Below are positions 7,471 through 54,895 of a DNA stretch of 64,000 bases, one piece after another. This stretch comes from Neoechinorhynchus agilis (lineage: Eukaryota; Animalia; Acanthocephala): positions 19,311,081-19,375,080 of the forward strand of contig CM121341.1 in NCBI GenBank assembly GCA_051530055.1, in the 5' to 3' direction. Position 1 is the stretch's first letter, and each line of letters opens with the position of its first letter. The notes under the pieces are model-generated. The model saw nothing but the letters and a program-made list of their open reading frames with translations. It did no database searches and was not told the DNA's origin. Made by a program: the position numbers and the translations under genes.

Positions 7471-7556
7471 TATTGTAATATTCTTTACTTATTAGATACC
7501 GGTTCAACAAGTTCTTAAGGAAACTGTTATATCACAACTCCTAGAAAATTAGATGG

Positions 7557-7589
7557 CTGATGGGGCGAGGCTTCCTCACGAAATATTTC
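7557..7589 (+). ncRNA. Degenerate minimal hammerhead motif (inverted PLE terminal repeat)
   Basis: CTGATGG-G-GCGAGG-ctt-CCTCAC-GAAATATTTC followed by AATAAA. It sits at the 5' side of, and antisense to, the PLE remnant. A9G change and one stem II mismatch. Confidence 0.6.
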
Positions 7590-7690
7590 GAACCAATAAA
7601 ATATGTTTTATTCGGGGGAGGGATTGTGATCACCACAATTCCATTCAAGAGAATACATTTATTTTTTCTTATCAAGTAAAATGTGTTCAA

Positions 7691-10643
7691 TCAAGCAGAA
7701 TATTCGTGAATTATCAATCTTAGAACATCTGATTGCGAATCATCCGATAATTTGAAGGCCTCTTGAATTTTGATTAACATATCGTATGTAATTCGATCGG
7801 TGACAACGGAGTCTTTTTTGTATTCCGGATGTCGCGAAATATAATTTCGGATCCATCGAGCATTTGTCATTAATTTTCCTTAATCAAGAATATAATAGAA
7901 AATATTTCAGGGAGAAACGAACCGGAAGCACGGCATGAAATAAAATGGAGATAGCAACCTAATTTGCAACAAGTTTCTGGGTCAACGTCAATTGTATCCA
8001 CATAATTTCTGATAAGTGGGATCAATCCTTCAAAATTGTCCTAAGAAAACGGGTACAGCTGACGCAGAATAATTCATACGTACACATCCATTTATGATTT
8101 CATCGATCGTGAGTTCATGTACTGAGCAATAATCGATTCCCGGTGTTTCTTCGTCGTCGTTGCCTTATACAACAACAATACTAACTTCGTTTTTTCTTAT
8201 GAAAAACTAAACCTCTTTGTATGTTTGTGTTGCAATAAAAAGTTTCTTTGATAACAGCATCTCTTTTTTGAGCTCTTCGCATATTTTCTTTAACCTCGAA
8301 GACAATAATTTGTAAATTTTGATAAACCAAAATTTTTGGTCGAACCATTGATACCGGGATTATAAAGCGAGTTCTGTAGGATAAAATAACCCTTGTTATA
8401 AGCAGAATAAATGTGACTAAAGCAGCATTCTCGAATTCAGTAAATTGCAGCTATGAGAATCTTGGTTAATGTGCTAATGCTTCAACTGAAAATACCTCGG
8501 GTGTTCTAAATTCAACCCGCCATCCAATGTTCGATCCAGGTGGTGGAATTTTGAATCGCATATTATTCCAGTTTGTCGATTGGATAGTCTTCAAGGTTAC
8601 TGCTAATATTCACTTGTTGCTTCTTTACAGAGAAAAAATACCTCAAAATGGAAAGTATCGTTTGGACGATAATCGAGAATATCTTTGAATACAACGAGGG
8701 GTTGCCTAACGAATAGATGAGCAACGTGATCTGCTAACAAATGATCGATATCTAAAATAGCTCGCAAATCTTGCTACTTGAACGCAAAATCTTACTAGCA
8801 TCGATTAATTCTTTATGATACTGCTCGTTTTTAACCAAATCAATGTCATTATAAATAGCGCCGTATCGTGAAATATAAGAATCAAGTGTGCTGTAACGAG
8901 ACGTATTTATCCTGTAATTAGGTCCTTCGTGATCAACCTATGGTAAAATTGGTTTTTATCTAACAAATATGCGTACATTTATACCTGTTCGTCCGACTTA
9001 CTTCTTTCATACGCATTCCTATCATCTACTGAGGATGCTATTACTTCCCATCGGCAATCAATATCGCTCAAGTATCCCTTCCATACTGGTGAAGCTGCAC
9101 TTAGCGCTAACTGCGACAATCGAAACTTTAGAAATAATTCGGTTAACTGACTAAAATGGGTGTTAGTGGACATAAGTGATCGTAAAGCATTCTAGCTTCT
9201 TCAGCGTTTGATGCCTGAAAGGTCACTTGAAGACAACAACATCCCATTCCAAAACCCATTGCGTCCATATAAATGTGATTCGGAACAGCCCGTTTGGTTT
9301 CATCCGGAAATTTATCAACTGCAGGGTCAATGAATGGATTAGGGGTGTTTGTATCCATAAATACTAAAAAGTAGAGAATAAGCGCAGGTGCTAAGTAAGC
9401 AAGCTAAATTATTGACCTGGAACGTTGATACAAACTTTCTCCCCACGTCTTGCCTTTATGTTTCTAGCTAATGTCAGGAACCGTGGATGGCCTTGAGTCG
9501 CGGCCTCGTTAGGAAAAAATAGGGAAAGAGCTGCGTTGCCCTTTGAATCTATACCAATAGATGGATCATAAGACGGGGTCGTGAAATTCGGACATCCCAA
9601 TCTAAATATGAAAGCAGGACATAAAAACATGAACAATTCAATCTTTAAACAGTGAATAAACAAAAGAGAGATTATTTATAGTAATTTTTTATTTTTATGT
9701 GTGACCAGCCGAGTATATATTCCTTTTTAAGTGTTGTGAACATGCCTTTCATGGCTGTGCGCTCAAGGAAAATTATCAGCCGTAAAAGGGATGCTCACAA
9801 CACTTAAAAAGTATTTTTTATACAAACACTTTTATAAGTGAATTCATATTACGGTCTAAAAATTCTGGAGGTGTTTATCTGTAACCGGCGCAAGACATGT
9901 AGCTCGGAAATACCGAAAAGAGTTTATTAAAATGTAAGTGAGTTTAATCGACTAATAGTATAAAGTTTGTAAACAGCAACAAGGCTTCGTGCGCTTCAAT
10001 ATCGATCGCGAGCGCGCGAGGTACAAAAGCGGACAAACCTGGGGAAGCAAGTCATCATCAGAACCACCTCGTCAGGAGCAAGTTGTGATTGGAGTTGTCT
10101 TCGTCTAAACTTAGAGGCTCAATGCGAATTATGAAACTTACATTGTCGACTTCAACCTTTTCTTCATGTTGCACTCTACAATTCCTATATCGCCAATGGT
10201 ATGTTTATATGGCTTTCCAGGAGTTGCCTCGATCATGTATTCGGCAAACTCATGAACCCAATGGGTTGAACAATCGTCGTTTCTAAACTTACAAGCAAAC
10301 AGTGTTTTTGTTTGAAAAGACTAACTGATTCAAATCTCTTTCTTTAGTAAACTTTTTTAAATACTCGGTTGCAACCAATGCCAATTGTACCTTTTTGTTC
10401 GTGTGGTCGAACTTGGCTACCATGTATTCGATCTTTGAAATAGAAAAACACAGTTTTATAAAAACACGAACTGAGAAAAGCGAATAAAGTTACCTCGTCT
10501 CCCCATCGCAAAAATTCTCCTCTCTTTTCCTTTAGATTATTGTAGGCCTCAATAAATTGTCGCAACCCAAAATCATTTAATCTTTTTAAATGCTGTTGGG
10601 CCTCCGACCAATCGAGCGGCTCCCCGATTTCCAACAAACCCAT
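7691..10643 (-). CDS. GCLC: Glutamate-cysteine ligase catalytic subunit, multi-exon
   Basis: Exons traced by eye with GT-AG junctions: [12 protein letters not shown]...RWGDE / IEYMVAKFD / [15 protein letters not shown] / [11 protein letters not shown] / [22 protein letters not shown] / [25 protein letters not shown] / [24 protein letters not shown]. Stop at 7691. Confidence 0.96.
9723..9811 (-). repeat. 35-bp-arm inverted repeat (19-nt loop) in the longest GCLC intron
   Basis: CTTTTTAAGTGTTGTGAACATGCCTTTCATGGCTG versus the reverse complement of 9777-9811: 31/35 identical. Confidence 0.85.
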
Positions 10644-11404
10644 TAGTCTGAAATGAGTTACGACTGAGAACACGTCTTAGGGAGCAACGCTAAGACAACT
10701 TAGTCTTAAAGTTTGCTCATGTACTCCTTTTATTCTGCATAATGCCCTGCACGAAAGAAGTTTATGATCCATATATCAATTATCCGCCCTTCAATGAAAC
10801 TTATCGTCTGACTTTGATACCAACTTTCTATCTAGGAAAAAGTTGAATCGAAATTTTATATGGAAAAACGTTAAGAGCTAATTTGGCACAGAAAATGCGA
10901 CTCCAAAGACGAAACGGGTTGGGTTTTTCTAAAAGGTCCACAAATTCACCCAAACTATGAGCGGTAATTTTAACTGGACCTCCGCTCTTTTTTCTCAGCC
11001 GCTCAATCCTCCAAATGCGAATTGATTCAGAGGAAAGAACGAAAACCAACAACTAACAATTAACCAACCAAAATCAAATAAATCTCCTACAAACAATAAC
11101 CACCAATTCCCACCCTAACGGACATCCCCTGACGGGATATTAACATACAAACGGGCATTTCCCAACCGGATACTCCCGAACGAACCCGCAATCCTCTGCA
11201 AAATAAACAACGGCTTTCTTTAGACAAATCGGAACTCGATTACTCACGAGGACCCAGAGGTACATGGTTTCTCTGTTTGTATCAATTAAATGTGTTATTA
11301 TTAAATACGAACGTCCACTAAAAAGCGAAATAAGACATTATTTCTTTTTAATGTCATATATCATTGTTGGTTGTTTTGGAGAACTACAATTGATTATTTG
11401 TTAA

Positions 11405-12435
11405 ATTCAATATTTCGATCCCCTATCTTGGATCTTCTCCAGAATCTAAAATACACACATTCAGGGATTATCAAGTTATATCCGGTGGAACTCTCATCCT
11501 CACTCTGAAGTCTGGCTTATTGTCTTCAAAAGTATTGTACCTGCTGATGTAAAGCGTCTCTACAACAATTCGTTCAAATCGTTTATCGTTACGTACGGGT
11601 GTGGCAGCACCATTAAAATCAATTGTGGCCGATGTTTTTTGTGTGAGCCACCACTGCTGAACTCATATCCGTATTACGAGCAATTAAAGATTTGTGTTCA
11701 TTCATCCGCCTTTTAAAATTGTTGGTTTGTCCCACGTAAACCTGTTCGCACCAAGAACACTGGATTTTGTAAACCGAGGCGGATGTCTGCTGATCTTTCT
11801 TGGGGCAAATCAGCCCATGTAGATTACGCCTCCTCTTGGTGTAAACGTCAACTCGTTTTGAATCGCATCCAGATTTCATCATACGCTCCATCGCGTGATA
11901 CGAGCGATCGTCAGGAAATGGTAGCTTAATAAACACACTTTCCTTTATCGACTTCGACTCACTTTGGGATGCATACCACACATTCCGAACACACTCTTCA
12001 AGAACCTGGAGCGGATAGCCATATCGACCTGACAGATATTTTAGGAAATCAATCTCCTCGTTGACCAACTTGTCATTGCTGCAGTGTGTGAGAGCGCAGA
12101 GGATGAGCGATATGATCCTGGTCTGATGTCCATTGCACAAGGCCCACTGTTATACCTCTCTTTCGATATACGCTGGTCATGTAGTGACAATTGTATGATC
12201 GATCAATTTTTACATTGAGAAAAGGAAATATTCCTTGATTTTCGTCCTCAATCGTCCACTGAATATTCCTGTCTTTTCCGTTTAACTCGAACTTAAGACG
12301 ATCTATATTAGTCTTCGAAGGGTCAATTAACAGGGCAAGTACAGGCGCTAACGGGCTACCCATCGCCACTCCGTCTATCTGGTCGTAGTCGATGCCATTA
12401 AATTGGAAGTTGCAGAATCTGGTACAAAAATGCAA
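11405..12435 (-). mobile_element. Penelope-like element, 5'-truncated and internally deleted (RT C-part, GIY-YIG, 3' repeat)
   Basis: FQFNGIDYDQIDGVAMGSPLAPVLA, ENQGIFPFLNVKI, and GIY-YIG VYKIQCSWCEQVYVGQTNNFKRRMNEH. Confidence 0.9.
11409..11442 (-). ncRNA. Minimal hammerhead-like motif at PLE 3' end
   Basis: CTGGAGA-A-GATCC-aagatagg-GGATC-GAAATATT downstream of the GIY-YIG. The A6G change is probably inactivating. Confidence 0.65.
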
Positions 12436-12439
12436 TGAT

Positions 12440-12930
12440 TTTCGCCAGTCGCTTATGGTTAACGAAGTAGTTTTTTTAGCATCCTTGTATTTGTGAATGT
12501 TGGTAAAGATTTTATCGAGATGTGAGCTAGTGATATAGGAAGATCATTGAAATTACCAAAAATGATTAGATGTTCCAGACCAAGGGAGTGAAGATTTGCT
12601 ATCATTGCATCAATCTCTTGTGATGGCATTTGTAGATTGGCTGAGGGAGGACGATAGATACCGATAATGGTTAAATTTCGGCTGCCTGAGCGAAGTTTGA
12701 GAGGAAGCGTTATGTATATGTACTCTAAGTATTATGATTGGTAATTAGTTGAAGGGGAGCGGAAGTAATGAAGGTCGGACCGAATGAAAACGGAGACCAC
12801 CTCCTGCTCGTTCCTCTCTGTAAGAGTGGAAGACGTGTAGCCAGGGATTAAGGCGATGTCGGAATTAGAGCAGTGCAGCCATGTTTCCACAATGACCAGA
12901 ATGTCTGCGTTGGTGGTAGGAGTATCTTCA
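12440..12930 (-). mobile_element. APE endonuclease remnant of a CR1/L2/Jockey-type LINE
   Basis: ADILVIVETWLH...IPGY...IIGIYRPPS...LIIFGNFND. Near-identical stretch at ~44585-44680 (+). Confidence 0.8.
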
Positions 12931-16209: not shown

Positions 16210-17384
16210 AAATCAATCGAGCGACGTGACAATATTTTAGTCATTCTCATATGCTTCGAAGTTAAGGAATGGATTTGATTTATAATTACCAATTATTAAA
16301 TCTGGCATCCTACTAAAAAGGCAACTCGCATTAATTTTAAAGAAGTGACTTTTCCAAAAATTATGGCTTATATTTTAAATCTGCAGTTTTATTATTTGAA
16401 TAGCAAATTCATCGTTTAAAATTGAAATAACATCACTGGATAATTTTTTTGAGGTTTGAAGACCCCCGAAAAACCAATTAATTCGTTTACTTGTTTAATC
16501 AAAGGTGGAAGTACAAACGAAGCCTTTAACATGACTTAATAAGGAAGCTAATACCGACTCTTGAAATGTACAAAAAACGGGATCAGCGAAATTTGTATAA
16601 GACGAAATTGCGTCGTTTTAAGACCGGTATTTTGCTCGATAGCTAATTTTTAAGCAATAGAAAATTATGAACAATGGAGTCTTATTTTCATATGTATTTA
16701 TCGTAACTCTGCATTTTCATGCAACTAAGTTTTTCGATTTTTTTGCTTCGAAAAGAATCGTTTATTTTGTTAGAAAAGTATGATTGTGTTCATTTATGTT
16801 CGTGTTATTGTAAACTTTGTGGAAGAAAATCTTCCAATCATCAATCATCGATCTTAATTCTATCCTGTAAAAAATTGCATATAAGACAAATCACTAAACG
16901 AATTTTAAGGTTTATGAATAATCTTACGCTTTAGAAGTTGAGTTAATTTAAATTCTTATTTCTATGGATTTCGAAAAAAACAATAACTAACATTGATAAT
17001 GATCTAAGATGACATTTTTCTTAAATGCGTCTTGCCCGCGATATAAGTAGGCAACCAATGATAATCCGCATTGAAATTAGGCATGAAATAAAATGCTAAT
17101 TACCAACGAGTCGTTGAGGAACCTGTGTCTCAAAACACCACCTATTGGTTATTTTCTCTCAAAATCTTTAGGCTTTGATCAGCACAAACAAGCAGTTTCA
17201 AAAGACAATATGTTTGTACCAACGATGATTGTGTGTAAGCTTGACGCGAGGTTACAAGTTATCAAGTCGAGAATCGTGATAGCTCGGTATGTGATGGGAT
17301 GACAATTAATATGTGTCTTGGTCTCACATCTTTGCATTTCCACTTTTCTAGAATTTAAAAGTGAGTCAATTCAGAAAGATTAAA

Positions 17385-17825: not shown

Positions 17826-18053
17826 TGCAGAAAAATGGATAGCGTCTAAATATTATTGCTTTTATATTTTTAGCGTAGATATAACGATTATAGTTTTTAT
17901 TTGTTTCGTAATCAAAATAAAAACAAATTAGTACATTCTCAAACATTGATTTCCTTACTACTTGACAGTTGCACAATGCTTTTAACCGGCAACCATTTTT
18001 GATAAAAAAACTTACTGTCTTGGATTATTATCTTTGGGGGAAAAGATACTTTC

Positions 18054-18213
18054 TTTTGGTAGTTATACACACTTGGATGTAAATTCCTAGATTTATTGCC
18101 GATATTTCGTCGGATAATTCCGACATTATCAAGACCTATCATCTAAAATACAAGCACACCAGTGTTATCCTGAGGACTCGTTATTATCATGCGATGTGAT
18201 CGAGAAACCCCTG
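18054..18213 (-). repeat. Left 160-bp inverted terminal repeat (PLE pLTR-like) with hammerhead fold at 18088-18145
   Basis: Exact reverse complement of 27674-27833 (checked base by base). On the minus strand it reads TTGATAA-T-GTCGGA-atta-TCCGAC-GAAATATC, then AATAAA and an A-rich end. Confidence 0.92.
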
Positions 18214-21200
18214 TTTCTGGACTCTTTGTCCACTGAAACCTCTAAGGAAGAGCACCATTGTTTCCTCAATGGAAATTTCAAGCTGACGCTCGCCTTGTTG
18301 CCTTTCATAGATTAAACTGAGGAGCCTATTTCGATGGCTTCCATTATTGGTCGATTTTGTAAATGTAGTTGTACGCTTATCAAATTTGCGTCATCAAAAA
18401 ATCATCAAAGAGCAAAAAACGTTTTCGCAACCTGGCGTTGCAGCGGAGGGTAGCGAACGGCCACCCAATGTCCTGAGGTTGCCTTTAACCTGAGCTTTAC
18501 GAAAGCAACTGCTTTCAAAACCCTCATCAAACTCAAAGCTCATTTGGAAGACTCTAATATCCCTCAACAGTCGATATCTTCAAATGATTCTCAGCATGAA
18601 AAGATGACATCACATCCTCAATATCAAGTCAAACCAAATAATAAAGAAAGACGTGATTTGCAATCAAGGCATTACTCCCTGGGCGCCTTCATTCCGAAAC
18701 GACGGTGTCAAACGAATCGATCGTGTCACTTCGGAGGAATCCTAAGAATTTATTTGACTAGTCATGTTTGGCCGTCCAGCCTAAAAGACTTTGCTAGCTC
18801 CAAACTTCCGCATTAAGTGGATTCAGTCGAATCTGTCACTCAAAACGTACAATTCCTGGCGAACGGATTGCAACCGAGCTTTATTCATGAAGACAAAGAA
18901 GAGTTTGAGAAACTTTTCAACTAGCTCGCACTGTGCCTTCAACTGTTCGGCAACCCCGAAATGCATTAATTGTGCGGAAAGGGAACATTCATCCCAGATT
19001 TGTCCAAACCAGACAATCAAGCGCTGTGCCAACTGCAACGGGCAACATTCTGTTTTCTATAAAGGATGCCCAGAATTCAAGAAGTATTGGTCTTGGGCCC
19101 AAAAAGGAAAAACGAACGCTACCCAAGCACCCGTTAAGTGCGCCAACCTAATGTCTCAGCGACTCCTATTGCTACTCCTTCGACTCGTGAAGTCAAGAGC
19201 TCGGACGCTACTGTCGCTCAATGCACGGATTCTTCACAACTGGTGACCATAGAGCATTTGGAACGGCGATTGGAGGGGCCTGCAACAAATTGCTCACCGT
19301 TATGCAAGCTCGCTTCACTGAGGATATCACAACCTTTGAGAGAAGGCTGCACGCCCTTTGCGTAATCTAGTGAATTTCCCCGATATAATTTCATCTAGTT
19401 GTTCCCAACAAAATGCAGCGAAGCTTAAAAGAGCCAATCCGAGTGATATTAAATCTCGAGCGCCAAAAAATCCAACGATGGCTCTGTTTTAGACCGGTCT
19501 AAAAGCGAGGATGCGTTCGTGGATCCTGAAGAATCCGATACAAATCTTGTCAATAGGATCATTAAAGCTCAAACCTTGCTTATCAACGATGGAACAGCGG
19601 CCCTCATCCAATGCAAACGCCAGAAATCTCTGATGATTCGAAGACGGGTGTTACAGTGGAATTGTGGTGGGGCGACTAATTTTGCCAGGCTAACTCACGT
19701 CATACCGGACATTTCGATCATCTTTCTGCAGGAAACGAAAAGTATTTATACTCAGGACCAACTCTATAATTATCTAACTCATCTGAACAGCTCAACATTC
19801 ATCTCTTTTATTACTCCCCCCATTCAGTCCCGCATCACAGGGTCTTATTTCAATTTTTCAATCCTCGTTAACTCCCACATTGGTGTCTTCTTTCATTTCA
19901 ACTGAAATGTCATACTCCCTTTTTAAAATTCTAATTAATCGTAAATATCTCTCATTTGTAAATTAAACCCAGTTTTATCCATCGACCGTATATTAGAAAT
20001 AGAGTCAAATGGCGTCTCAGAGCTAATATTGATTTTATTGTGGGAGATTTCATATTGTTAAAGCAATCAAACCTCATTATTATCTAACTTTTCCTACCAC
20101 TCCCTCATTCCACAATATCGCCTCAAATGCACACTCGTTCTTGAATCTGACCATTTTTAAAAGATATCTGAACTTTTCGATAGGTGTCTCTTTTTGACCG
20201 TTTAGGTCATGATATCCTGATATGGTCATTCGGTCCCAACGGTCTACTACGTAAAACCTTTCACATCTCTCCACTCAATGTTACCTTTCCCGCCTAGCTA
20301 GCCAAAATCTTTTATCTCTCACCTCCTACCGAAATGATCGGTCGTGCACTTTACCGTATGTTAACAACGCCCTTAATACATTAGCCAATATCTTTCTATT
20401 TCGTACGGTGAGCGTTTTCTCTCGTCCATATGAAAGTCGATCTCTTCGGTTTCTTGGACGCCAGTTTTTTCTCTCGAAACGTTCTGGAGACGCACTTCTT
20501 ACCAAAATTTTGTCAAGTCATTACTGGGCAGCTCATTATCTCGTCCAATTGCCATGGGTTTCAAAAAGGGAAATCGGTTCACTCTGCACTAGCTGATATA
20601 TATGCTAGCTTTTCAAACTCCACTCTACCTATAAGAGCCATTTTAACAGTTGATTTATCTCAGGCTTTTGACAAGATTTCTTTGTCCTTTATAATCAATA
20701 TGCTGGAGTTCTTTAGCGTTCCTAACAATTTAATTTCTCGAATTTTTAAGATTCTTTTTAAAAAGTCTTTTTATTACAAGGAGGACGCATTGAAATCGAT
20801 TTTCTACCCACTTACAGGTGTCCCTCGAGGATCTCCACTTTCCCCAATTCCTTTTCTAATAGCGTCTCAATATATTATTAAAAACTGCAATATTCGTGCT
20901 TCGCTCACCTGTTACGCGGACGACTTAACTTTTGTCATCTCTGCCCATAGAGCTGCCAAACTGAAATGTCTGATAAAGCAATGTACCGACTATCTCAACT
21001 CAATTTTACCACGTGTGAATCTTTCTCTTGTATTGTATGCAACGGTACTTTCCTACGTTGCACCGTAGGTATAAGCCCGTCAAATAGAATTAGACTCCGC
21101 AAGGATCTAAAATACACGACAGCAGTCCTGTTATGCGGGCAATTCGCGTCTCTTAAAATCAGGTCATCGTATGTACGACAGTTCCCTTTGCCTTTACGAT

Positions 21201-22700
21201 ACAATGTCGTTGGCTTCCAGAAAAGTAACTGTTGCACGACCTGTGGGCAAGATGCCTCGGACCGAATTATATTGCCCGTGAACTGCAGTCGTCTGCGGCA
21301 CAAATATTCACTGGGCGGTTGGACTCCGGCTCTCTTATACAGTGCTTTGTTGGTCACTTTATCTGACCATCTGACCTTAAACGCCGCACGTAAGAGAGAT
21401 GAATGATTTTGGTCCAACTGCCTCGTCGCCGTTGGTGACAGTGTCCAGGTCTCTGCATTGTAGTAGAGAATGCTCTCAATTAGAGCCCTGAACAGCTGCG
21501 AACGGAGTTCATCTGGCAAAGACTCACTGTCAAACAGTGGCTTAAGTTGCCCCATTGCTCTCCAAGCTTTAGCCCTCCGTTGGCTGACATAAGCACTCAC
21601 CTCAGGAACGACAGCTCCCAGATAGACCTACCGCTCTATCTGTTTTAATTGCTCAACGCCATTCGGCCCTTCGCCAGAGACTGTATGCGCGACATGCGGA
21701 ATCGTCAAGAATTCCGTCTTTTTTGAGTTGATGGTCAGACCAATCATACTCGCCCTCTCGCACAGTCTACTGAACATGCGTTGAGCTCCTTCGACTTTTG
21801 AGGACATCAATACGATGTCGTCGGCATATGCCATGTAGGAGGCGCGTATCTCAGGATACCCGCGACCTCTTTTACTCAAGATGTATATCTGAAATAGCTG
21901 GGCCAAACTGCTCACGGCTGTCAGCGCCACATGAAAAGTCCGTACCCACCACGGTGATGAGCTTCTACTGACGCTTTCGTTGCCTCCGGCGACAGTTTCG
22001 CTCATTTCGACGCTCAAGTCGTCGGCGAGAGCTACGACGCCCTCGCTTTTTCCCCTTTCACTGGTGGACTTTGTCGCTCCCGTTCGCTGCCGCATCACGA
22101 AGTGGAGCGGAACACCGACCCCGCGTGGCCGCCGGAGCTGCTTCTTTTACGTGGCCGACAAGAATCAGTAACATCAATTCCGATCATCGTGAAAGAAAGT
22201 TAGGGCTGCTCCAAATCGCTATGCATCTTTAAGGTTCGTTCATGTCGGCTTCTAAAAGAGCTCAAATCGTTTATTAATAATCTAGTGAACCCTCTAAATG
22301 ATCCCCTTGCGCTCAACTCCAACACCCCGCTTAAATTGCGCATTCTAGGGCACACTTTAACCGTCAATACTTCTCCTAGAACCGATATTAATAGAATAAA
22401 AAGACTTCTTAAAGTAGGTAACAAAATGGCTAAACGAGCGTTGAAAGTGGGAATGAATTCTTCGCAAGTTCAAGCTATATGGAAAATCTGGGGTATCCCC
22501 GGCCTTGTTTTTTCTCGAGAGGTCGCCCGCCAGAACTTAAGGCTTTCTTTGTCGACGCCTTCCGCAAACACCTAGATTCCCCACCGTTCTCCAGGGCCGG
22601 AGAGTTGATGAGTTTCTGTGCACATCGATTGAAGTGATGGATATCGTAACTTGACCGTTTCGTAAGATTTCACTCTGCCTAAATATACGATGAATAAATC
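18214..22700 (+). mobile_element. LINE-like module A (gag with CCHC knuckles, APE, RT), decayed and interrupted by an RTE copy
   Basis: CINCAEREHSSQIC and CANCNGQHSVFYKGC; VLQWNCGG...IFLQETK; CHGFQKGKS...VDLSQAFDKI...GVPRGSPLSP...YADDL. The RT resumes after 22197 and ends near GAATAAAT at ~22700. Confidence 0.85.
21028..22197 (-). mobile_element. Internally deleted RTE-clade LINE, same family as 49971-53276
   Basis: Shares the 5' end and the 3' part with an (ATACA)n tail. The N-terminal region is joined directly to RT domain 5 (about 2.1 kb missing). Confidence 0.9.
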
Positions 22701-22704
22701 TTGT

Positions 22705-23875
22705 TGTTGTCTTCAAAATCAATTGGATGTTCGCAATTCACCATGTGATTTGCTTTTGCTGAGGAAGCATCATAACGTCTACATGCATATCTGTGTCGTG
22801 CGATCCTTTTGTTGAGTCCTTGTTTGATCTGCCCCACATATTTGGCTGGGCAATCTTTGCAGCGGACTACGTATACAACTTCATGTTGCTCACATTTTGG
22901 CTTATTTTTAAGGATGCCTGCGAGGTTGCCATCCTTTGTGTTGCACAGAATGATTGTTTTGTCCAGGTTTCGCAAATCACGATTAAGTATGAATTGAAGT
23001 TTGTTATCCACAAATTTAATTCCTATATATTTAGGTTATTCATTCGCCAAACATGCAATGATTCCTTTCTCTTGTCTATTAGCGATGTTCTTGACTTTGT
23101 CGCAACTTCTTATCGCCGATTCGGGATAACCCCTTGCTCCCAGAACTTGAGTAATGAGACGTATTTCAACCGTTCTTAACTTGTTAGTTGAGCATATTCT
23201 ATAGGATTTCAGATACAGACACACAGCTACAGATCTCTTATAGGACTCCGGGGTGTGTGTTAACCAATGCGAAGGATACCAGGCTAAATTTGGTTTTCTG
23301 AACACACTTCTTTCTCCATCATTTGTAAGGAACCCTGCTCACTCTCTTCGGCTGTTACGGCTCATTTGATGTTATTATGTTTAGAATCCAACAACTTTTT
23401 TAAACTGTTGGTATCAATGTTATGTTCGATAATGAAGAATGCATCGTCCACATATCACCAGTATTTCTTGAGTCCAGGGGGCCAACTTTTAATATCCTTT
23501 TCCCAGCCTCGCATGAATAGCTCAGCTAGGGTGGAGCTAGAAGTGATCCCATTGCAACACCATCCTGCTGTTCGTAAAATTTTTCGTCGAATTTGAATGC
23601 CGTTTGTGTTTCGGGGCATTCGTGAATAAAGAGGCTACATCACCGGTATAAAAACGTAGTCCTTGCCTAGTACATTATCGAACTTCCTTGACAAAAGTAG
23701 CGCCATCTCTTATGTTGTGTTCGTAGTCGGCCATGCTCAACCTAAGCAAGCGATTGATGTCCTTTGCTATTGAGTGGGTGACAGACATATAGGATGTTAT
23801 AATCGGACGGAAGCTGAGTTCTTCTTTATGCACCTTTGGAAGGATGTATAAAAACGCATATTTCCCATTCGTTGA
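22705..23875 (-). mobile_element. Decayed Penelope-like RT + GIY-YIG core, truncated at both ends
   Basis: LYILPKVHKEELSFRPIIT; YVDDAF; LYLKSYRICS...GYPES; GIY-YIG VVYVVRCKDCPAKYVGQIKQGLNKRIARH...HPIDF. Confidence 0.88.
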
Positions 23876-23894
23876 TCTATATCTGTGTAATAGT

Positions 23895-26800
23895 AATTAA
23901 TTTATTCGTAAAGGTGACACAAGATATCGCACACGACGTCTGGAACCAGTTGCTCAACAGTTATAACCGGAATATTATTCAATTATGACGTTGCTGTTCC
24001 AATCCATCTCAAGGATTTGCTGGCCCAGTCCACAGAGGGAATCCACTCAAAAGGAAGTCTCGACAGAATTCGCAGAAAGACGCAACGGAAGGTTAGGCGT
24101 TGTTCTTGGGGCCTTCCACTGGAATAAAAGACCAGACCTGAAATAGCCCATGCGCACCATATCGTTTTACAATTCTTGGCGCTAAGTCCGATACGAGCGG
24201 CACGTCTGGCCTTAACTTTCGCCGTTTTCAGAAGTTTTTTCATCTTTCGCATATCAGATGCTGTCGATAGGTTATTCGTGAGTGTATAACCCAAAATATC
24301 GAGTCTCTTGTATACAGGGTCGAAATCTAACCCAAAAAACTCCTTTATACACTCTCTGATATTCTTCTTGCCTATTCTAGATTTAGATTTTATTAAAAAT
24401 TTCGTCTTGTTTTGGTTCAAAGAGAGACCCATTTGAGGTAGGTGCGATTTTAAAAAATTCAGCACGGCAGCCAATTTCGCACGTGATCGTATGTAATTAG
24501 ATTATTTAATGACCACAGAGAGGTCATCGGCATACATCGTTATGCCCCGACAAACGGTGCAATTTTGAATTAAAAATTGGGTTGCCAAGCAAAAGAGTAT
24601 GGGTGATAACGGTGAGCCTTGTGGAACACCCTTCGATTGATAAAACATAGTCCCTGCTGGATCGTCTACAAAATAAAATTGTTTGCATTTCAGTATGTTG
24701 TTTACCCTCGCAATAATATTAAAAGAAAAACTAAAAAATCTTAAAATATTTACAATGAAGGTGATGTCGATATTATCAAAGGCTTTCGATATATCGATAG
24801 AAATGAGAATGTTTGTCGGCATAGGATTTTTATAAAAATTATCTATTATATCATTGAGCGCAGTATGAACGGATTTCCCTGGTAGGAATCCATGACATCG
24901 CTCATCAGTTAGATGATGTATACAAGAAAATTCCAAAATAGATCTCGCCAAGACACGCTCGTAAATGGATACGAAAGAATTTTGAATGGATATGGGCCTG
25001 ACATCACTAGGTGAAGAAACAGCCTTGCCTCTCCTTTTAAAAAGAAAAATTCTTTTTGAAATGTTTATCTGAGGCTATTCCTCAGGTGAAGCTGCCAACA
25101 TGTGCTCGGCTAATGCTTTGATATTAGTTTGATTTAGCACATTCGTTGCTTTAAAACATGGGGACGAGCCATTACTCGATGAAAGATTCCTCGAACCCCA
25201 CCATTGGATAAAATCGTTCCTACAGAGATCAAAACGACGCGGTTTAATTTTAATAAAATTATGGCAGACCGGAATCTTACTCGCTCCATTACAATGCTCA
25301 GCGCAAAGAGCGCTAAAAACATTTTCCCAGCCCGAGGTTTTAATCCAATTAGCTGCGGCCCTCTTCCAATGACGGAATCGTTTTGGTGCAGCAACCTGCC
25401 ACCAAGGAGAAGAATATGGCATAAAAGATTTAATTCTCTTACTGTCGCAATCTAATTGAAAACGAGTTCTACAAGGCCAATAGAAAGCGGACCAAAACTT
25501 AATAGAATCCTTATCATCGAATACCTTAGCCATAAAAAGTTTCTTGCCATACATGGAAAGTAATTTTGGTATTTGAATATTCGAGCCTATGCATCTCTTG
25601 ACCGTTGTCAAAATTGAATCGCTAGCTGTGGCAACAAATTCATTTAGGTCGTTAAGCTGCATAAAGGCTCCAAATGTGGTAGCCAACTTTATTGCTGCAT
25701 TAAAGATGTCTATATTGAGAGCACTCAATTTAAATTTACGGCACAAGAGAGTATTACACCCCAAAACCCATACTAGGACATCGTGTCCAGCAACTCGAAA
25801 AATTGATGATTGCGAAACGAGTTTGGGTTTAACGGGAAAGTTACTTCATGCAAGGCGCAAATCTAAAAAAGAATGGGACCTGCCGTCAGAAAAGGTAGGA
25901 GCAGTAAGAATAAGAAGTTCATGTGTGCCACCTGAACGTAAAATGGCCTTCAACCATTTCTGGGACGGATCGTTAAAATCGCCGAAACAGAAGTCAATTC
26001 GGGTTGCTAAAACATTTTTCATAATATCCTTATTCTGTGATAAGTGAATTTTTTTAGGTCTAATAGAAAAATTCCCTAAAAGTAATTTCCTCCCCTGAAA
26101 CGAATCGGAAATATAGCGTTTGATAAATCTGGGGAGGTATACTCTGAAATTAGAGTTGGCTGGAGGTCAGTCCTAAAAATGGATAATAAACCTTGAGAAT
26201 TGTTCAAAAAAGGCTTTGTGCAAAATAAAGAGTGTTCACTAGATAAGATATTAAAACTACTAGGAAGGTTCTTAAGGGAGTGGAGCGATTTGGTTTCTTG
26301 TATAAAAGTAATATCACATTTCTGTATTTCGGATAAAAGGCCAGGGATACCCAGAAGCCCGCCTGCGTTCCACTGCGCTATCCTCAATTCCATCGGGGCT
26401 TACCTTTGAATAGATTTTGGACTCCGTCCGCACAGACCTGAGCTTGTTCTTCAATTATATTTTTCACGAGGTCCTCGTCTTCGTGCATGTCGATATCGTT
26501 CACATCGTTGCACCCTGCCCCAGGAGCTCGACTTCGTTTGCATGGTGATGGCGCAACACCGGCCGTTATTTGAAATTTATTGAATATGGTCGAGAGTGTC
26601 TCTATAAGACCATTTAACTGAGCCGCAAGTCTCCTCTCCAGCCCTTGTATGGCTGCGGTGATTCGCAGATCCACCATATCTAAAATTTTGGATGAAAAAT
26701 CTGCGAATTTTTTCTCCAAGGTGACCTCATACGTCGGTCGAGGAATATCGACATATTTGGCAATTTGGTGGATCGGTTGTGTTTTTTCCGTCACATTGGT

Positions 26801-27673
26801 ATTAGCATTCCGTCTTACGGGATTGTCGGATGACGACTCTAGCCTCCTCTGGGTCATTCGGGAGTCCAATGAGTTTTTACTTTGAGATCCCTGACGTCTC
26901 GCCCAACCAATATACTCTTTGAAGGCTGCACAGTTCTTTGAGAAGGCGCAATGTCCATCACGATTGCAGTTGGAGCAGTGACGTTACTTTCTCTCGCACT
27001 TTGAGCTCTGATGATCTTGGCCACAGAAAGCGCATCTCGTTATTTTGGACGGGCACTTTTGCTCCCAATGACCCCAACATTGGCAAGCGTTGCATCTCGG
27101 AAAGTGAAAGTCGTCATGGTGTGATATCTCGTTTGCTATGAATTTGACTTCCATTGATTGAAAAAAACATCGTTGGGGGCATAGAGCATCCCTCCGTTCG
27201 ACCTCAGCTTTCACAATTGCATTGGGAATGCACTTACCCGTCCTCGATTTCAGGAAAAATAGAATTTTAACTCCAAATTTCTCCTCAAAAGCTCTCTTAT
27301 CTGAATCATCGCTATCCGGTGAGAGTCCTGAAACCATAAAGGTTGAGTCGTAGCTCGTGTTAGCGATTGAAACTCCTGCCAAATCGCAGTTCTTCTTTGT
27401 GAAGGTTAGGTAAGCCTTGACGAAATCCGCGGTCATGAATTTGATTTTCAGAATACCTCCAAAATAACTAAGGGAAGAGATTCGATGAGTGTCGTCTCTA
27501 AGAGATTTGAGCAATGGCGCCAAATAACGTCTGTGTAGCTCTTCTCTGGATAGAATCGGCGTAGATTGTATTTTAATCGTATTGGGCCATTTCCTAGACG
27601 GCACCTCCACGAAGTTTTTGTTAGTTTGTTCGCTGAGAATTTGAACCCGGATGTCCGGAGGCACTGGGATTCT
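23895..27673 (-). mobile_element. LINE-like module B (gag, APE, RT), near full-length with frameshifts; homologous to but highly diverged from module A
   Basis: Three Cys/His knuckles (CNACQCWGHWEQKC, CAFCGQDHQSSKC, CSNCNRDGH); IAQWNAGG...FIQETK...GDFN; CHGFLPGKS...IDISKAFDNI...GVPQGSPLSP...YADDL. Confidence 0.88.
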
Positions 27674-27836
27674 CAGGGGTTTCTCGATCACATCGCATGA
27701 TAATAACGAGTCCTCAGGATAACACTGGTGTGCTTGTATTTTAGATGATAGGTCTTGATAATGTCGGAATTATCCGACGAAATATCGGCAATAAATCTAG
27801 GAATTTACATCCAAGTGTGTATAACTACCAAAAAAA
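27674..27836 (+). repeat. Right 160-bp inverted terminal repeat (pLTR-like) with hammerhead fold at 27742-27799
   Basis: Identical to the left arm plus 3 extra A. Core 27755-27761, stem II 27763-27778, GAAA 27779-27782, predicted cleavage after C27786. Confidence 0.92.
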
Positions 27837-27851
27837 GGAAAAGAAACTTAC

Positions 27852-29790
27852 GTTGACTTTATCAATTGAATCAACATCTTCGCCTTTTTTGAGTTTACGC
27901 CTTGTAAATCAGTGATTTTTAGACTGCAATTGTACTTGTTTGTGAATTAAAAATCTTCAAGTTGACCATAAGGATTTTCATTATCAGTTTTCTATAAAGC
28001 TCTGCATTTTTCAATAAGATAAAACACTTGCAAATGGCTCGAAAAAAAGTTCTTTTCGCCAAATTAACAACTTAAAGGATGAATGGTTGCGGATTGTAGT
28101 GCTTTTTTATTGCGATTGGCCACTTCTGTCAAACATACTTTTGTATATAAATTAGTGCGGAAACCATATTCGTTTCGGATATTCCTTATCGAGTTTAAGT
28201 CATTACAACCCTTATGTTCAATCAGGAACATGGCGCAAAGCGTATACATCGCTGAATTTTTGAGCAAAAAGGTTAAATACTTCCTGTAAATCAACATTTT
28301 TCTCAATGTTTATTCCCATATAAATAACTTCGGAGAATCTTCTGTTTCTGAAAAGGTCATCTTATCTTCTTAGATATAGCAAAAGAACTGTAAGGTACGT
28401 TTCTGAGGCCGGCTTAAAGGTGGTTGTTGGATCTTTTAATTTTTATATTTGAAAATTATGCCATTTACAACCTCTTCTCCTAATCGTAAATATCGTTGTC
28501 CAATATTTTTTATCTACGGTGTTGACTACCGGTCCATTACCACGAAATTCAAACACGTGATTGAATATTATATGTAGAATATGGAATGGAGCTAACAAAC
28601 CATCATGAATTACAGTAACTATTTCCTTTTGAAATTCAAGAAGTCTAAGAACGTTCAAGCGTTCTTGCCTCTTGCATTAAATATCAAAAAAATCGTTTAG
28701 AACAATAGATCTGTGGGCGTTTACTAATTTTTGAAAAGCTTGAATCTTTCAGTGCGATTCTACATTTTTAGTCATATTTTCCATTCCGCTCTTTTGCGAG
28801 CGATGTCGTATAAAAAATGTTCCAGTTGATCAAAGTGTGGTTAAAATTTCGCTGTTTTTACATTCCGATGCATACTTACGAAAGGTACATAATTTGAAAG
28901 GCATAACAACTAAGAAAACAACGTTATAATAACTCAATTGTGCAGAAATGATAAAATCTCCCATAATTAAGCGAACTCCTACACATCGATTGTTCGCGAA
29001 CAAGAGATTTTATACATTTTAAAACGCAAGACTCCTTAGCACATCGGTTTGAAATCGTGAAATAAAATTTATCCAATAATAAAAAATGGGCAACTCCGGA
29101 AATATCAGTCATATCTTGAGGGTTTTGGTCTTTCTTAAGTAACTAATTATGAATATTTCTTCTTTTAAGCTTCAAAATTCTACACAAATCCGTGATTCTC
29201 ACAATATTTGTTTGTTATATCGATCTTCGTCAAGCAGAGAATAGCGTAAGGGTCAAATGCAAACTTTTGATGGAGATACTTTAGAGCCTTAAACCCATAT
29301 TTACTTCCCAAGTTAGTAAATTCTACTTTATCAAGCCCAGATGGAGGCTTAAACGCAAGGAGAGACTGTTGTAGATAAATCCAGATATTTTATGCTCGTT
29401 CTTGATGCTCATGTTATCGAATATGCCTAAAAATACGCCAAGACTTCGGCATTGAAAAAAGATATCAAACCATTGAAATGACTGTTTATCAGCATTTTGA
29501 ACATAAATTCACGCTTGTTAGTGAATTTCTCGGGAAACAAAAACTCACTGAAGTATATCTTTGTAAGATCTCGCTAAACAATAGTACCCAAATCATTTCT
29601 TATTTTAATGAGTCCTGTTTGGGGCTGACATTCTAGGGCGATCGTTTTGCTCGGCATATTATATACAGTAACATGGGTGGGCTTGCCGTCACCCGTCTCA
29701 CAATCATACAAGCAAACTTGAGATGATTTTGCAACCGTAAAACTACCTTCCTCACAAACGTCCATATCCAATCCTTTCTCTACCATCGGA
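27852..29790 (-). CDS. Probable multi-exon gene of unknown function; may continue at ~18040-17940 across the composite insertion
   Basis: Several protein-like segments separated by GT-AG-like short introns (e.g. IWIYLQQSLLAFKPPSGLDKVEFT..., NVDLQEVFNLFAQKFSDVY, RKLKKGEDVDSIDKVN|gtaagt). The exon structure is not fully resolved. Confidence 0.35.
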
Positions 29791-29933
29791 TGGTTCCGAA
29801 GCTCTCATATCTTTCTGAAGTATTTTGTTAAACAACTCGTTCATTCGAACGCAACAAACCTAAATTGCAAATATGTTTACTGCACTTTTGTTCTTTCATT
29901 TTTATTGTTTTATAATGCACTCAATACAAGTCA

Positions 29934-35380: not shown

Positions 35381-36564
35381 TCTTTTAATTGAAGAAGAAG
35401 CGGCGGTACCTGGATTTCCAGTGAATGATTCTCACATCCACCACTCAGCACGCATCGTCGTGACATTCGATTAAGCCGTTTGATTTTACGTGTTGAAGAA
35501 ACTATCTTTTCGGGCTTAATAATTCAATTTAACTAAAAAACGAACCTCTCGTTCCTTTGATAAACGGTAAACTCTTCTTTCTGTCGATTTGAAGCATTGA
35601 ACTAAGCGAAATTGTTGTAGTAGGTTATTAAAAAAGAACATGGACTAACAAAAACTCATTGAATGAATCCGACGATTCTGGAGGATAATTATCACTCATG
35701 TCCACAAACAACAACTGTAATATATGTTTATATAAAAAGAAATTAATAGTTCCGAATATCGCGGCAGATTTTCAACGCCACATGATGTCATCTTGAATTA
35801 AGATTCTTCCGTCGTTCAAACTTACAAACTGTTTTCCTGCTTCTAAACTTACTGCAATGCTTAATGTAATTCTGCCATTTTGTTTCATTGGAAAGTGTAT
35901 TCATTTTCTTTTATAGGCCGGTTTTCCAATTTATAAAAGTTCCTACGGGAACAACGGAGCCTCTTTATTTCCTGGAAGTGTGACTACTGGGTTAGTTCTA
36001 AGTTGCTGATTTAAGCATTGGTTGTAAAAAGTTCATCTATACAAAGCATCGAGCCGACGTTTCAAGACATTTGTACTTCTCCCTTTTTCGACAATGAACT
36101 TTGATTCCTGAAACTCCAAGAAACAAGTCGCTCTTATGAACCGTATTCGGCCAGGCGAAGTTTCATTCAAGGAGATTACCTCTCTGTCATACTTATAAGA
36201 GTATGCACCATACTGTGGAGATTATGCCTGGATATCATTTTGAGGCAGGAAGCTAGGCCTAGTCCCAAAGCGAGACCAAAGGAACGGTCATCCATTTTTG
36301 TACAAAACGATGGAGCTGGTTCTTTGGGGTCGTCACCATAACTTCTCAAACAATGGCGCGACCAACGTTTTTCTATTGATGTATCCGTTAGTACAGTTAG
36401 TTCGAGTTCTATATGTCATTCTCCAACTGCGATTCTATAAGATTAATCGCTAATACCTGATTGGAAGGCCAATACCTAATTGTTCCGATAAGAAATGTTG
36501 CAAATTAAAGCATTTAGGCGGCATGTTCGGCAAACAGATGAGCTAAAGGCCGGGATTGCCAAAG

Positions 36565-41896: not shown

Positions 41897-42764
41897 AGCA
41901 CAGAACGTCAAATATCGGTGTAATAAGTGTGAACGAACAAATCTTAAAGATAATAGTAAATACGTTTATTGTTTGAAGAAAAACACACACGAACAAATAC
42001 GTTTTTGTCGACAAATCTTCTCATTAACTTATTTCAACGAAGCAAGTTCAATATGTATATCGCTCCTTATGAATTTGTAAGCAGATATAATTTTAATGTG
42101 TCGTATAAAAACCATGTAAGTCAATTAAACTTAAAGATCATTTGGCTAATTTTCAAAGCAAATAAAAAATGCACGTAGGATTATTGGACAGAAAATATTT
42201 CGCCCTACAAATATCGAGAATGGGTGCATTAACGAAGATTTGTCAGCATTACTTTTAGGGCTTAATATGAAATTAAGCCATCCTTCCAAATCTCTACGTC
42301 GCCCTCCTCTGCGCAGCTTTTACAGAGATCATAAACGAGGATGCGAATCGGTAAGATAGCTCTCGAATTGTCAAAAAACTATAAAATATCGTATTATGAT
42401 TTGCATAGTGGCTAACAGTCAGAAACTAATATAGAGGCGGGTGAACTAAACGTAAGTTGGCTTTTCGTTTCGCTAAATGGGCATAACAAATGCAACATAT
42501 CTGTGGATGGTCTACATAGGAAATGTGGAGAGGACGCCAAAATAAATGGCAGATTCTCGTGGTATCAACGGATACAATCATGATAATGTGCAGAAGTTAA
42601 TCGAACGAAAAAAATTACGAAAAAGAAGTCAATAGAAAACACGTAAAACATTAAGATATCATTGTGATCTAAGATTTCTCACTTAGATATTAAAATTCTG
42701 TTTGCAACTAATTAAGTCTCTTTCTCCGAATTGCATTCAATACAATGCTACTTAAACAATTATT

Positions 42765-54864: not shown

Positions 54865-54895
<31 letters not shown>

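Follow-up and report, generated by a model that had tools for sequence, protein, structure and literature searches.

An inverted-repeat block of ordinary PLE architecture, probably a single PLE insertion later invaded by nested retroelements

Endonuclease-encoding (EN+) PLE units (Penelope/Poseidon, Neptune, Nematis and Naiad; Arkhipova 2006; Craig et al. 2021, PMC8557442) carry a reverse transcriptase (RT) followed by a C-terminal GIY-YIG domain. They are frequently 5'-truncated, have variable target-site duplications, and a hammerhead motif lies within their terminal or UTR repeat. Typically, a 5'-truncated partner copy lies inverted at the 5' end of the unit, so that inverted repeats enclose the whole (PMC8557442). 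Purified PLE protein cuts and extends the top strand as well as the bottom one (PMC11167929). A minimal hammerhead with a U3-A8 core, as well as pairs of motifs on opposite strands, was reported in PLEs (Cervera and de la Pena 2014, PMC4209133).

The block described here was found in a window of 64 kb (the whole stretch of DNA analysed), which is the last 64 kb of a 19.4-Mb record. Its PLE has an RT followed by a GIY-YIG region, is itself 5'-truncated and comes with a target-site duplication and, at its 5' end, a 5'-truncated partner in inverted orientation; a hammerhead motif is present in the terminal repeat. Unlike the canonical units, the block shows no direct pseudo-LTR, owing to the truncation of the main PLE copy; it also has a LINE between the two PLE copies, at their head-to-head junction, and its tail ends in AATAAA and a short A-run.

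With the bdelloid Terminons and Athena elements the block shares a PLE-type RT, hammerhead-bearing termini, a large unit with other ORFs and a subtelomeric position. The resemblance does not hold beyond this point. In contrast to the endonuclease-deficient Athena RT, the PLE of the block has a GIY-YIG region. Terminons contain several co-oriented non-RT ORFs, whereas the interior of the block holds nothing but LINE, RTE and PLE remnants of mixed orientation and no extra host-like ORFs, and its "cargo" is made up of ordinary decayed retrotransposons, one of them with its own duplication. A search for telomeric repeat stretches with 12 candidate units, including TGTGGG, TTAGGG, TTAGGC and TTAGG, revealed none in tandem except one chance TGGGTGGG at 29674.

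LINE-1 twin priming and 5' transduction offer a further comparison. As in these processes, the 3' ends face outward, as if synthesis had been primed at each nick of a staggered break, the ends of the cDNAs seem to be joined by microhomology, and carry-over of upstream sequence on a read-through RNA is possible. Unlike in LINE-1 twin priming, the terminal sequence is the PLE tail and not the 3' end of a LINE itself, and the two LINEs of the block belong to families without shared DNA similarity.

Inverted arms, outer duplication and minimal hammerhead

The two arms of the block (18054-18213 and 27674-27833) are reverse complements of 160 nt with 100% identity. The match reaches 163 nt with a single mismatch, located inside the A-run. 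The arm pair is flanked by direct repeats of 15 bp (13/15 identical), a target-site duplication around the whole PLE unit. Among random position pairs of the window, 7 of 200,000 matched at 13/15 or better at fixed positions, corresponding to a chance of ~3.5e-5; with a slack of +-3 nt, 7 of 20,000 random trials in the window did so. Both the exact inverted repeats (160/160) and the flanking direct repeats had been predicted and were borne out. The coordinates of all features are summarized in Table 1.

Table 1. Features of the PLE-bounded block (positions within the window)
Feature	Position	Strand	Basis
Left 15-bp target-site duplication copy GGAAAAGATACTTTC	18039..18053		directly adjoins arm A/T-run
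PLE 3' part: GIY-YIG ORF end, 3' UTR, short A-run; last 160 nt = left arm	18054..18404	-	blastx after joining to 22709-23897
Predicted PLE-type minimal hammerhead, U3-A8 core, left arm: GUC UUGAUAA U GUCGGA-AUUA-UCCGAC GAAA UA UC/GGC	18098..18135	-	descriptor scan
Left target-site duplication copy of LINE-L GTCATCAAAAAATCA, PLE sequence	18390..18404		match to 22709-22721
LINE-L: full-length gag(CCHC)-APE-RT non-LTR element, heavily decayed, RTE-interrupted	18405..22708	+	L005 homology, RVT_1 E=1e-19
RTE, internally deleted, inside RT region of LINE-L	21028..22197	-	identity to full window copy 49982-53257
Right target-site duplication copy of LINE-L GTCTTCAAAATCA	22709-22721		match to 18390-18404
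PLE body: RT from LYxLPKVHK motif and first part of GIY-YIG; 5'-truncated	22709..23897	-	BLASTP to P0001
LINE-R: gag(CCHC)-APE-RT element; ORF2 and 3' end complete	23898..27673	-	homologue ORF ends, L005 5161-8684 alignment
Right arm: inverted 5'-truncated 160-nt partner copy of PLE 3' UTR and A7 run	27674..27836	+	identity to left arm
Predicted PLE-type minimal hammerhead, U3-A8 core, right arm	27752..27789	+	descriptor scan
Right 15-bp target-site duplication copy GGAAAAGAAACTTAC	27837..27851		direct repeat of 18039-18053, 13/15 identical

Beyond the two arms, no further copy of the 160-mer is present in the 64-kb window. Inside the unit, neither extra copies of the flanking 15-mer (half-site duplications) nor annotated gene calls were found. 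No PLE tail copies were detected in the same-genome loci L006 and L007, and neither the 160-mer nor any junction recurs in ~85 kb of other readable loci of the same genome; three other loci (~63 kb) and the remainder of the window likewise lack the internal junctions, and L005-L007 lack the 160-mer. An exact 22-mer from the arm had no match among JGI metagenome contigs. The only other fragment of the family that was found is a diverged piece of ~90 nt of the PLE tail on another chromosome, covering arm positions 87-167. A protein search with the neighbouring Nic96 gene for an orthologous or allelic empty site returned at E<=1e-20 only the Nic96 gene itself.

Each arm contains one predicted minimal hammerhead; in the right arm it is followed by AATAAA at 27791-27796. 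No Rfam hammerhead model (type I/II/III/HH9/HH10) matched at the gathering threshold or at E<=10, whether the input was the entire window, the 10-kb region or just the 231-nt arm. A hand-built descriptor of the U3-A8 variant, comprising the core boxes with positions 3 and 8 paired, a bulge after A9, the G10.1-C11.1 pair, helix II, GAAA, a palindromic 15.2-16.2 and UH at the cleavage site, matched both arms and had 0 matches in 100 shuffled windows. Thus, the hammerhead of the original prediction does not correspond to an Rfam model, but fits the minimal type of PLEs. A MAFFT alignment of hammerhead motifs was structurally wrong and was set aside.

The arm motif resembles the Cercyon-type PLE minimal hammerhead of Schistosoma mansoni (PMC4209133) in that UUGAUAA replaces CUGAUGA, G10.1 pairs with C11.1, helix II is long (6 bp), 15.2-16.2 (UA) is palindromic and helix III is lacking. 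The presence of one motif per arm parallels the opposite-strand motif pairs reported for Cercyon-type PLEs. In contrast to these, helix I of the predicted motif is only ~3 bp long, and a single family member was seen besides a decayed fragment.

The main PLE copy and the elements inside it

The PLE core was aligned by BLASTP to residues 162-568 of the PLE-like protein P0001 (E=4e-21), and the PLE body carries 5 stops and 3 frameshifts. The PLE-type RT signature (LYGLPKVHK ... RPI ... YVDD) was recognized by alignment to P0001 residues 162-379 and onward and by blastx, and the GIY-YIG signature (CxxC ... YVG ... R..H) is represented by CKDCPAKYVGQIKQGLNKRIARH, aligned to residues 540-568. When 23897->22709 was joined to 18389->18054, one single-frame blastx alignment ran through the junction to P0001 residue 638/641, and the R..EA..I end of the GIY-YIG domain was recovered once LINE-L was removed. 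Judged by its sequence, the left arm forms the final 160 nt of a minus-strand PLE that is 5'-truncated (23897->22709 and 18404->18054). Pfam gave no hit on the decayed PLE copy, with RVT_1 below threshold, and a protein search with the decayed core returned a single distant match only. Between LINE-R and the PLE body, local alignment for a short PLE remnant on the plus strand did no better than with shuffled sequence. The P0001-homologous frame stops at 18312-18314 or shortly after, that is 60-100 nt upstream of the arm. The QGFLDHIA* of the arms, which had been read as ORF-end-like, lies in a different frame and is not the end of the PLE ORF.

RVT_1 was detected in the two LINEs (E=4e-29 and 1e-19), which belong to related families with about 36-47% amino-acid identity and no DNA similarity. 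Another locus of the same genome, L005, served as family reference. LINE-L shares its 5' UTR block and its 3' end (...GATGAATAAATCTTGTTGTT) with the family copy in L005, which is located on another chromosome, and the comparison identified 22576-22708 as its 3' UTR. LINE-L ORF2 contains at least 4 frameshifts and 6 stops. The duplication copies around LINE-L (13-15 bp) differ by one substitution and a 2-nt change in A-run length. With both ends complete, a duplication of its own and the PLE restored on its removal, LINE-L is by these sequence marks a separate insertion in the PLE GIY-YIG coding region. The RTE within LINE-L is 94% identical to 49982-50819 over 21028-21879 and 87% identical to 52920-53257 over 21886-22197; to L005 511-993 it is 97% identical. 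RVT_1, BLASTP and the RTE identity confirm the interior as originally described, namely a decayed PLE RT-GIY core, two gag-APE-RT modules and an RTE fragment. The cargo is not symmetric as had been assumed: the left arm is continuous with the PLE body, LINE-L starts at 18405, 191 nt inside the arm boundary, and only LINE-R abuts an arm.

LINE-R ORF2 ends where the ORFs of the closest homologues end (P0004: 799/828 for query 564/593; HMMER), and its 3' end ...ACGAATAAATT is common to L005. At the 5' end, ~68 nt are missing according to the alignment to L005 5161-8684. LINE-R has no target-site duplication of its own and is joined to the right arm via a 3-nt CTG microhomology. It lies between the partner copy and the PLE 5' end, collinear with the PLE and on the same strand, and its complete 3' end meets the point at which the PLE is 5'-truncated, where the junction contains AATT. 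In L005, a head-to-tail LINE dimer was observed within one putative duplication.

Other arrangements of the two LINEs were considered and rejected. A 3' truncation of both at one point, with the PLE C-terminus after "DFEDNNK", is contradicted by the LINE-L 3' UTR at 22576-22708 and by the complete ORF2 of LINE-R. Site-specific LINEs targeting CAGGGG of the PLE tail were dismissed, as LINE-L lies 191 nt from CAGGGG, in the GIY-YIG region. That each LINE underwent classical twin priming from its own 3' end was discarded as well, since these 3' ends (…AATAAATT and …AATAAATCTTGTTGTT) are unrelated to the arm.

Origin of the block

We regard it as probable that the block represents one insertion of an endonuclease-encoding PLE which was later invaded by nested retroelements. 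The PLE machinery would cut both target strands 15 bp apart and prime reverse transcription from both ends, and we infer this two-strand priming from the published biochemistry and the published unit architecture. One end would give rise to the minus-strand main copy of ~1.5 kb, 5'-truncated inside the RT, and the other to the 160-nt copy of the same 3' tail in opposite orientation, leaving two outward-facing identical arms and a 15-bp target-site duplication. LINE-L would then enter the GIY-YIG coding region by target-primed reverse transcription and make its own 13-15-bp duplication, and the RTE would insert afterwards into LINE-L. LINE-R, at the head-to-head junction of the PLE copies, is most likely a later insertion that deleted target DNA, because it has no duplication, is 5'-truncated and shows the 3-nt microhomology. 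We infer this order of events, together with gene conversion that would have kept the arms identical.

Since the ends are PLE 3' tails that face outward within a statistically real, target-site-like duplication, the block is bounded by a single PLE insertion event. In this respect the single PLE-terminated unit of the original prediction stands; it is not an undescribed composite, as its architecture is of the published PLE type. Outward-facing inverted tail pairs with minimal hammerheads were also observed in the window at 42762-42976 and in the 55-62 kb repeats, with no clear duplications around them.

The main difficulty for the nesting model is the age of the parts. The arms show 0 differences in 160 nt, compared to 2/15 in the outer duplication and one substitution plus an indel in the LINE-L duplication. 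LINE-L carries at least 10 disabling mutations, yet must postdate the PLE insertion if nested, and by our own arithmetic ~6-10 arm differences would be expected had it decayed in place. Identical arms around a decayed, younger LINE-L mean that, under the model, gene conversion must have acted on the arms. Against efficient conversion speak three further inverted tail pairs of the window, which differ by 2-8% between arms separated by only 9-13 nt. The position of LINE-R, without a duplication exactly between the PLE copies, requires target deletion or coincidence, and a single PLE unit of 1.7 kb holds both copies of this LINE clade present in the window. That the PLE is continuous across 18213/18214 is seen in one copy, the other fragment covering only arm positions 87-167, which likewise may count against nesting. 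Either the arms were homogenised by gene conversion, or the nested block was copied in one step.

One-step copying, a more precise form of the mobilisation proposed in the original prediction, is rather unlikely in our estimate, but it is the most serious alternative. LINE-R, the truncated PLE and LINE-L with the RTE (~9.6 kb) would have been retro-copied together on a read-through RNA by PLE machinery acting in trans. At the source locus, a 5'-truncated PLE already bearing LINE-L and the RTE would lie downstream of LINE-R on the same strand, and the RNA would start in or near the LINE-R 5' end, end at the PLE tail and be reverse-transcribed at the left nick, as in 5' transduction. The cDNA would have stopped ~68 nt short of the LINE-R 5' end and been joined by the CTG microhomology to the 160-nt cDNA from the right nick. 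Such an event accounts for the identical arms around a decayed interior, for the absence of a LINE-R duplication, for the truncated LINE-R 5' end joined to the arm by microhomology, and for the collinear arrangement in which the 3' end of LINE-R immediately adjoins the 5' end of the PLE. A 5'-truncated PLE without its own promoter would presumably need transcription from upstream, the diverged tail pairs speak against the gene conversion required otherwise, the L005 dimer suggests that this genome produces chimeric cDNAs, and PLEs were reported to retrotranspose host genes in trans (PMC8557442). However, the 2/15 mismatches of the outer duplication are unexpected for an event so young that 320 nt of arms stayed untouched, and no second copy of any junction or of the 160-mer was found in the ~85 kb of readable same-genome loci. 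Moreover, transcription would have to pass the AATAAA signal of LINE-R, a cDNA of ~9.6 kb would be needed, and nesting is far commoner than transduction. Identical arms thus favour one-step copying from a source locus, whereas the mismatched outer duplication and the prevalence of nesting favour accumulation in place.

That LINE-R alone was captured during PLE integration, with LINE-L and the RTE arriving later, seems improbable. A template switch to the LINE-R RNA 3' end, made by the PLE cDNA or during repair of the two cDNA ends, would fit the complete LINE-R 3' end at the PLE truncation point with AATT, the missing duplication and the microhomology at the other end, and end-to-end template jumps have a precedent in the L005 dimer; but the age conflict between arms and LINE-L remains, and capture is here indistinguishable from a later insertion with target deletion. 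Two independent SINE-like or retrozyme-like insertions of ~160 nt on either side of an older retroelement cluster are very improbable. Identical copies, as in a young family, an A-run at the end of each and the diverged 90-nt fragment on another chromosome would agree with them. Against them, the arms individually lack flanking duplications (on the left TTTC at most, on the right nothing), the significant 15-bp direct repeat flanks the pair jointly, the left arm runs upstream into PLE 3' UTR and ORF, and no more copies occur in the window or in L005-L007. Least probable of all, despite the perfect inverted repeats and the flanking direct repeat, are an assembly artefact and a DNA transposon whose terminal inverted repeats measure 160 bp. 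The supposed terminal repeats end in AATAAA and an A-run, being a retroelement 3' UTR, the block contains no transposase, a 15-bp duplication is atypical of DNA transposons, and a 160-bp repeat should be too short to mislead a chromosome-scale long-read assembly.

Under the preferred nesting model, the block exemplifies PLE insertion in textbook style, primed at two ends, with an inverted partner and a target-site duplication, bearing a U3-A8 minimal hammerhead and later invaded by other retroelements. Its architecture is ordinary for a PLE and does not make it a composite element of a new kind; it is of use in annotating this genome and cautions against taking nested clusters for composite elements. 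What interest remains lies in the conflict of ages: the arms are perfect, whereas the duplications are imperfect and the interior is decayed. Without a source locus, the block would be a clean example of gene conversion acting over several kilobases between inverted repeats of 160 bp. If a source locus exists, it would be direct evidence that PLE machinery can carry ~10 kb of unrelated sequence on a read-through transcript, which, if true, bears on the origin of giant PLE-terminated units such as Terminons.

Arms, outer duplication and PLE content of the block

One of the window's host ORFs places it in assembly GCA_051530055.1. By its coordinates, the window is the terminal 64 kb of CM121341.1 (19,375,080 bp) in the same orientation, and no genes are called within 19934-29933. 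As originally predicted, the two arms of the 9.8-kb block are exact reverse complements. The match reaches 163 nt with one mismatch in the A-run, and no third arm copy was found in the window. The 15-mers flanking the arms were likewise confirmed as direct repeats (13/15 identity). In 200,000 trials with randomly paired window positions, 13/15 was reached 7 times, and with ±3 nt of slack it was reached in 7 of 20,000; the duplication is therefore unlikely to have arisen by chance. The interior also proved to be as described: two gag(CCHC)-APE-RT elements (RVT_1), termed LINE-L and LINE-R, an RTE fragment and a decayed RT and GIY-YIG core of a Penelope-like element (PLE), which aligned to residues 162-568 of P0001, a PLE-like protein of 641 residues (E=4e-21).

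LINE-L and one copy of its flanking duplication were excised in silico, joining 23897 to 22709 with 18389 to 18054. Against P0001, blastx aligned the restored PLE in one piece, keeping the same frame across the junction, up to residue 638 of 641 (...CEHPIDFED/ANLISVQLHLQNRPIMEAIEI..., junction at the slash). The left arm therefore closes the 3' UTR of the main PLE copy, forming its final 160 nt; an AATAAA lies at 18091-18096. On this side of LINE-L the PLE 3' end spans 351 nt (18054-18404). The 191 nt separating the arm from LINE-L are the PLE ORF end plus UTR, and the P0001-homologous frame ends at the stop 18312-18314 or, should this one be secondary, some 30-40 nt further on. QGFLDHIA followed by a stop, initially taken for an ORF end, sits in a different UTR frame. 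In the right arm, 160 nt of this PLE tail are repeated in inverted orientation, and the left arm has its inner limit simply where similarity to the right arm ends.

Hammerhead motifs and further tail pairs

The hammerhead assigned to the arms was upheld in part: Rfam hammerhead models did not match the arms at any scale searched, but the arms fit the minimal hammerhead published for metazoan PLEs. Their motif (GUC UUGAUAA U GUCGGA-AUUA-UCCGAC GAAA UA UC/GGC) differs from CUGAUGA by two changes, C3 to U and G8 to A. Exactly these two departures make up the U3-A8 covariation reported, with about 1,300 hits, for the Cercyon PLEs of Schistosoma mansoni (PMC4209133). The arms thus carry a PLE-type U3-A8 minimal hammerhead motif, a putative self-cleaving ribozyme whose predicted cleavage site in the right arm follows C at 27786. 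A purpose-written descriptor for this architecture was scanned over the window and 100 shuffled windows. It matched both arms, a second U3-A8 example at 42893-42921 with a different helix II, and four canonical C3-G8 motifs in the repeats at 55-62 kb; the shuffled windows gave zero matches.

The tail-pair signature recurs, with the arms nearly adjoining, in a 101-nt pair (42762-42976) and in 108-nt pairs (55212-55436 and 61431-61655). The 101-nt pair consists of outward-facing inverted copies of a different PLE-like tail, 92% identical and 13 nt apart, each with a U3-A8 minimal hammerhead (at 42893-42921 with helix II GCGAGG/CCUCGC) and AATAAA. It resembles the product of PLE priming from two ends, with the body almost absent. 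Together with a copy at 58333-58539, the outward-facing 108-nt pairs occur once per 3.1-kb terminal repeat unit, with a 9-nt spacer and a canonical C3-G8 minimal hammerhead in each arm. At 58375-58406, GGCU/AGCC replaces GGCC/GGCC, a compensatory helix II change. On one side of these pairs about 21 additional nt precede a CAAAAAGA direct repeat, resembling the published PLE 'tail'.

The 3.1-kb units are arranged in tandem from 53700 to 64000, where the 19.4-Mb chromosome record stops, and no telomeric repeats were found in this interval. Their content includes an RT ORF (RVT_1) and a 176-nt 28S rRNA fragment (61036-61211; LSU model positions 2137-2327), and the units may be rDNA-targeting non-LTR elements amplified along with a target fragment. 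The interval 36560-40840, between host genes, is occupied by satellite arrays whose periods measure 172 bp and 454 bp (85-91% matches). Two more decayed PLE remnants of other families were observed at 7250-12920 (minus strand; GIY-YIG Pfam match at 11619-12140) and 44580-49100 (plus strand; RT at 48112-48732), and these share an inverted 86-nt match of 95% (12834-12919 and 44587-44672).

Boundaries of the nested elements

A full HMMER scan with LINE-R ORF2 as query returned relatives including P0006, a protein encoded on another chromosome of this genome, and thereby the locus L005. Both LINE families have a copy at this locus, that of LINE-R with 75-80% identity and that of LINE-L with 74-78%, and element ends were set where homology to these copies stops.

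Features of the 9.8-kb block and the basis on which they were placed
Feature	Position	Strand	Sequence or basis
Left arm	18054-18213		Reverse complement of right arm
Right arm	27674-27833		Reverse complement of left arm
Outer duplication	18039-18053; 27837-27851		GGAAAAGATACTTTC; GGAAAAGAAACTTAC
LINE-R 3' end	23898	-	...ACGAATAAATT; L005 comparison
LINE-L 3' end	22708	+	3' UTR to ...GATGAATAAATCTTGTTGTT; L005 comparison
LINE-L 5' end	about 18405	+	Start of 5' UTR block common to both L005 copies
LINE-L flanking duplication	18390-18404; 22709-22721		GTCATCAAAAAATCA; GTCTTCAAAATCA
RTE	21028-22197	-	Matches two ends of full copy 49982-53257; lacks about 2.1 kb of middle

The end of LINE-R ORF2 coincides with the ORF ends of its closest homologues; the match to the related protein P0004 stops at residue 799 of 828, and at 564 of 593 in the query. 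The first base of LINE-R aligns with position 69 in its L005 counterpart, which reads GAGGGGTTCAAAAA at the 5' end. CTG is common to both sides of its junction with the right arm, and no duplication flanks the element. The stretch 22580-22700, considered as the PLE C-terminus, was rejected, as it is LINE-L 3' UTR on the opposite strand. Between the LINE-L and LINE-R families there is zero DNA similarity and about 36-47% protein identity. Instead of the symmetric, inward-pointing cargo of the original prediction, the block holds two unrelated insertions.

At L005 (CM121342.1, 5093-14320) the LINE-R-like and LINE-L-like copies lie head to tail with a T-run alone between them. They are flanked by GTGTTGTGGTAGTGA and GTGTTGTGTGTGTGA (12/15) and may be a chimeric insertion via an end-to-end template jump. 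The interval 16940-17128 of this locus contains a 5'-truncated PLE-tail fragment (17039-17128, 77% identical), the sole other trace found of this tail family, with a near-perfect foldback (arms about 45 nt long, GTGGCGGTGGGGGAAAATTATATC...) immediately upstream of it.

Order of events and classification

The age signals of the block are in conflict. Across their 160 nt the arms do not differ at all; two mismatches separate the copies of the outer duplication, and a substitution plus an indel those of the LINE-L duplication. At least four frameshifts and at least six stops disrupt LINE-L ORF2. The PLE body contains three frameshifts along with five stops, and LINE-R ORF2 one frameshift and three stops. 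If LINE-L had decayed in place after entering the PLE, an estimated 6-10 arm differences would be expected. All three substitutions in the outer and LINE-L duplications are A-T transversions, and may be errors of the fill-in when the duplications were made rather than later decay.

We lend somewhat better than even weight to nesting of the interior in place at this locus. Gene conversion between the arms would then remove the age conflict; however, the three other inverted pairs show 2-8% divergence although just 9-13 nt separate their arms. Alternatively, the insertion could be young: nesting and decay of the interior would have taken place earlier, at a source locus, and the interior would then have been copied here in one step on a single read-through RNA. 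Identical arms around a decayed interior would follow, as would a LINE-R that is collinear with the PLE, lacks a duplication and has its truncated 5' end joined to the right arm by microhomology. However, such copying needs a long RNA, the outer duplication carries two mismatches, and a second copy was not found in the limited other-locus sequence examined; we regard it as rather unlikely.

In contrast to R2 or L1, PLE protein in purified form cuts both DNA strands and extends both (PMC11167929). Two-ended priming from nicks 15 bp apart would explain why the tails face outward, why their A-runs differ in length and why the duplication measures 15 bp. The unit differs from Terminons in having an endonuclease domain, and neither telomeric repeats nor extra ORFs, both Terminon features, were found in it. 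It shows every tested defining feature of an endonuclease-positive PLE insertion, and the suggestion of an undescribed composite retroelement was not sustained. Given two-ended priming and the tail-pair signature elsewhere in the window, the unit is therefore classed as an ordinary PLE insertion, about 1.7 kb long, which LINE-L, the RTE and LINE-R have brought to its present 9.8 kb. The block is real as a sequence feature and belongs to a known kind.
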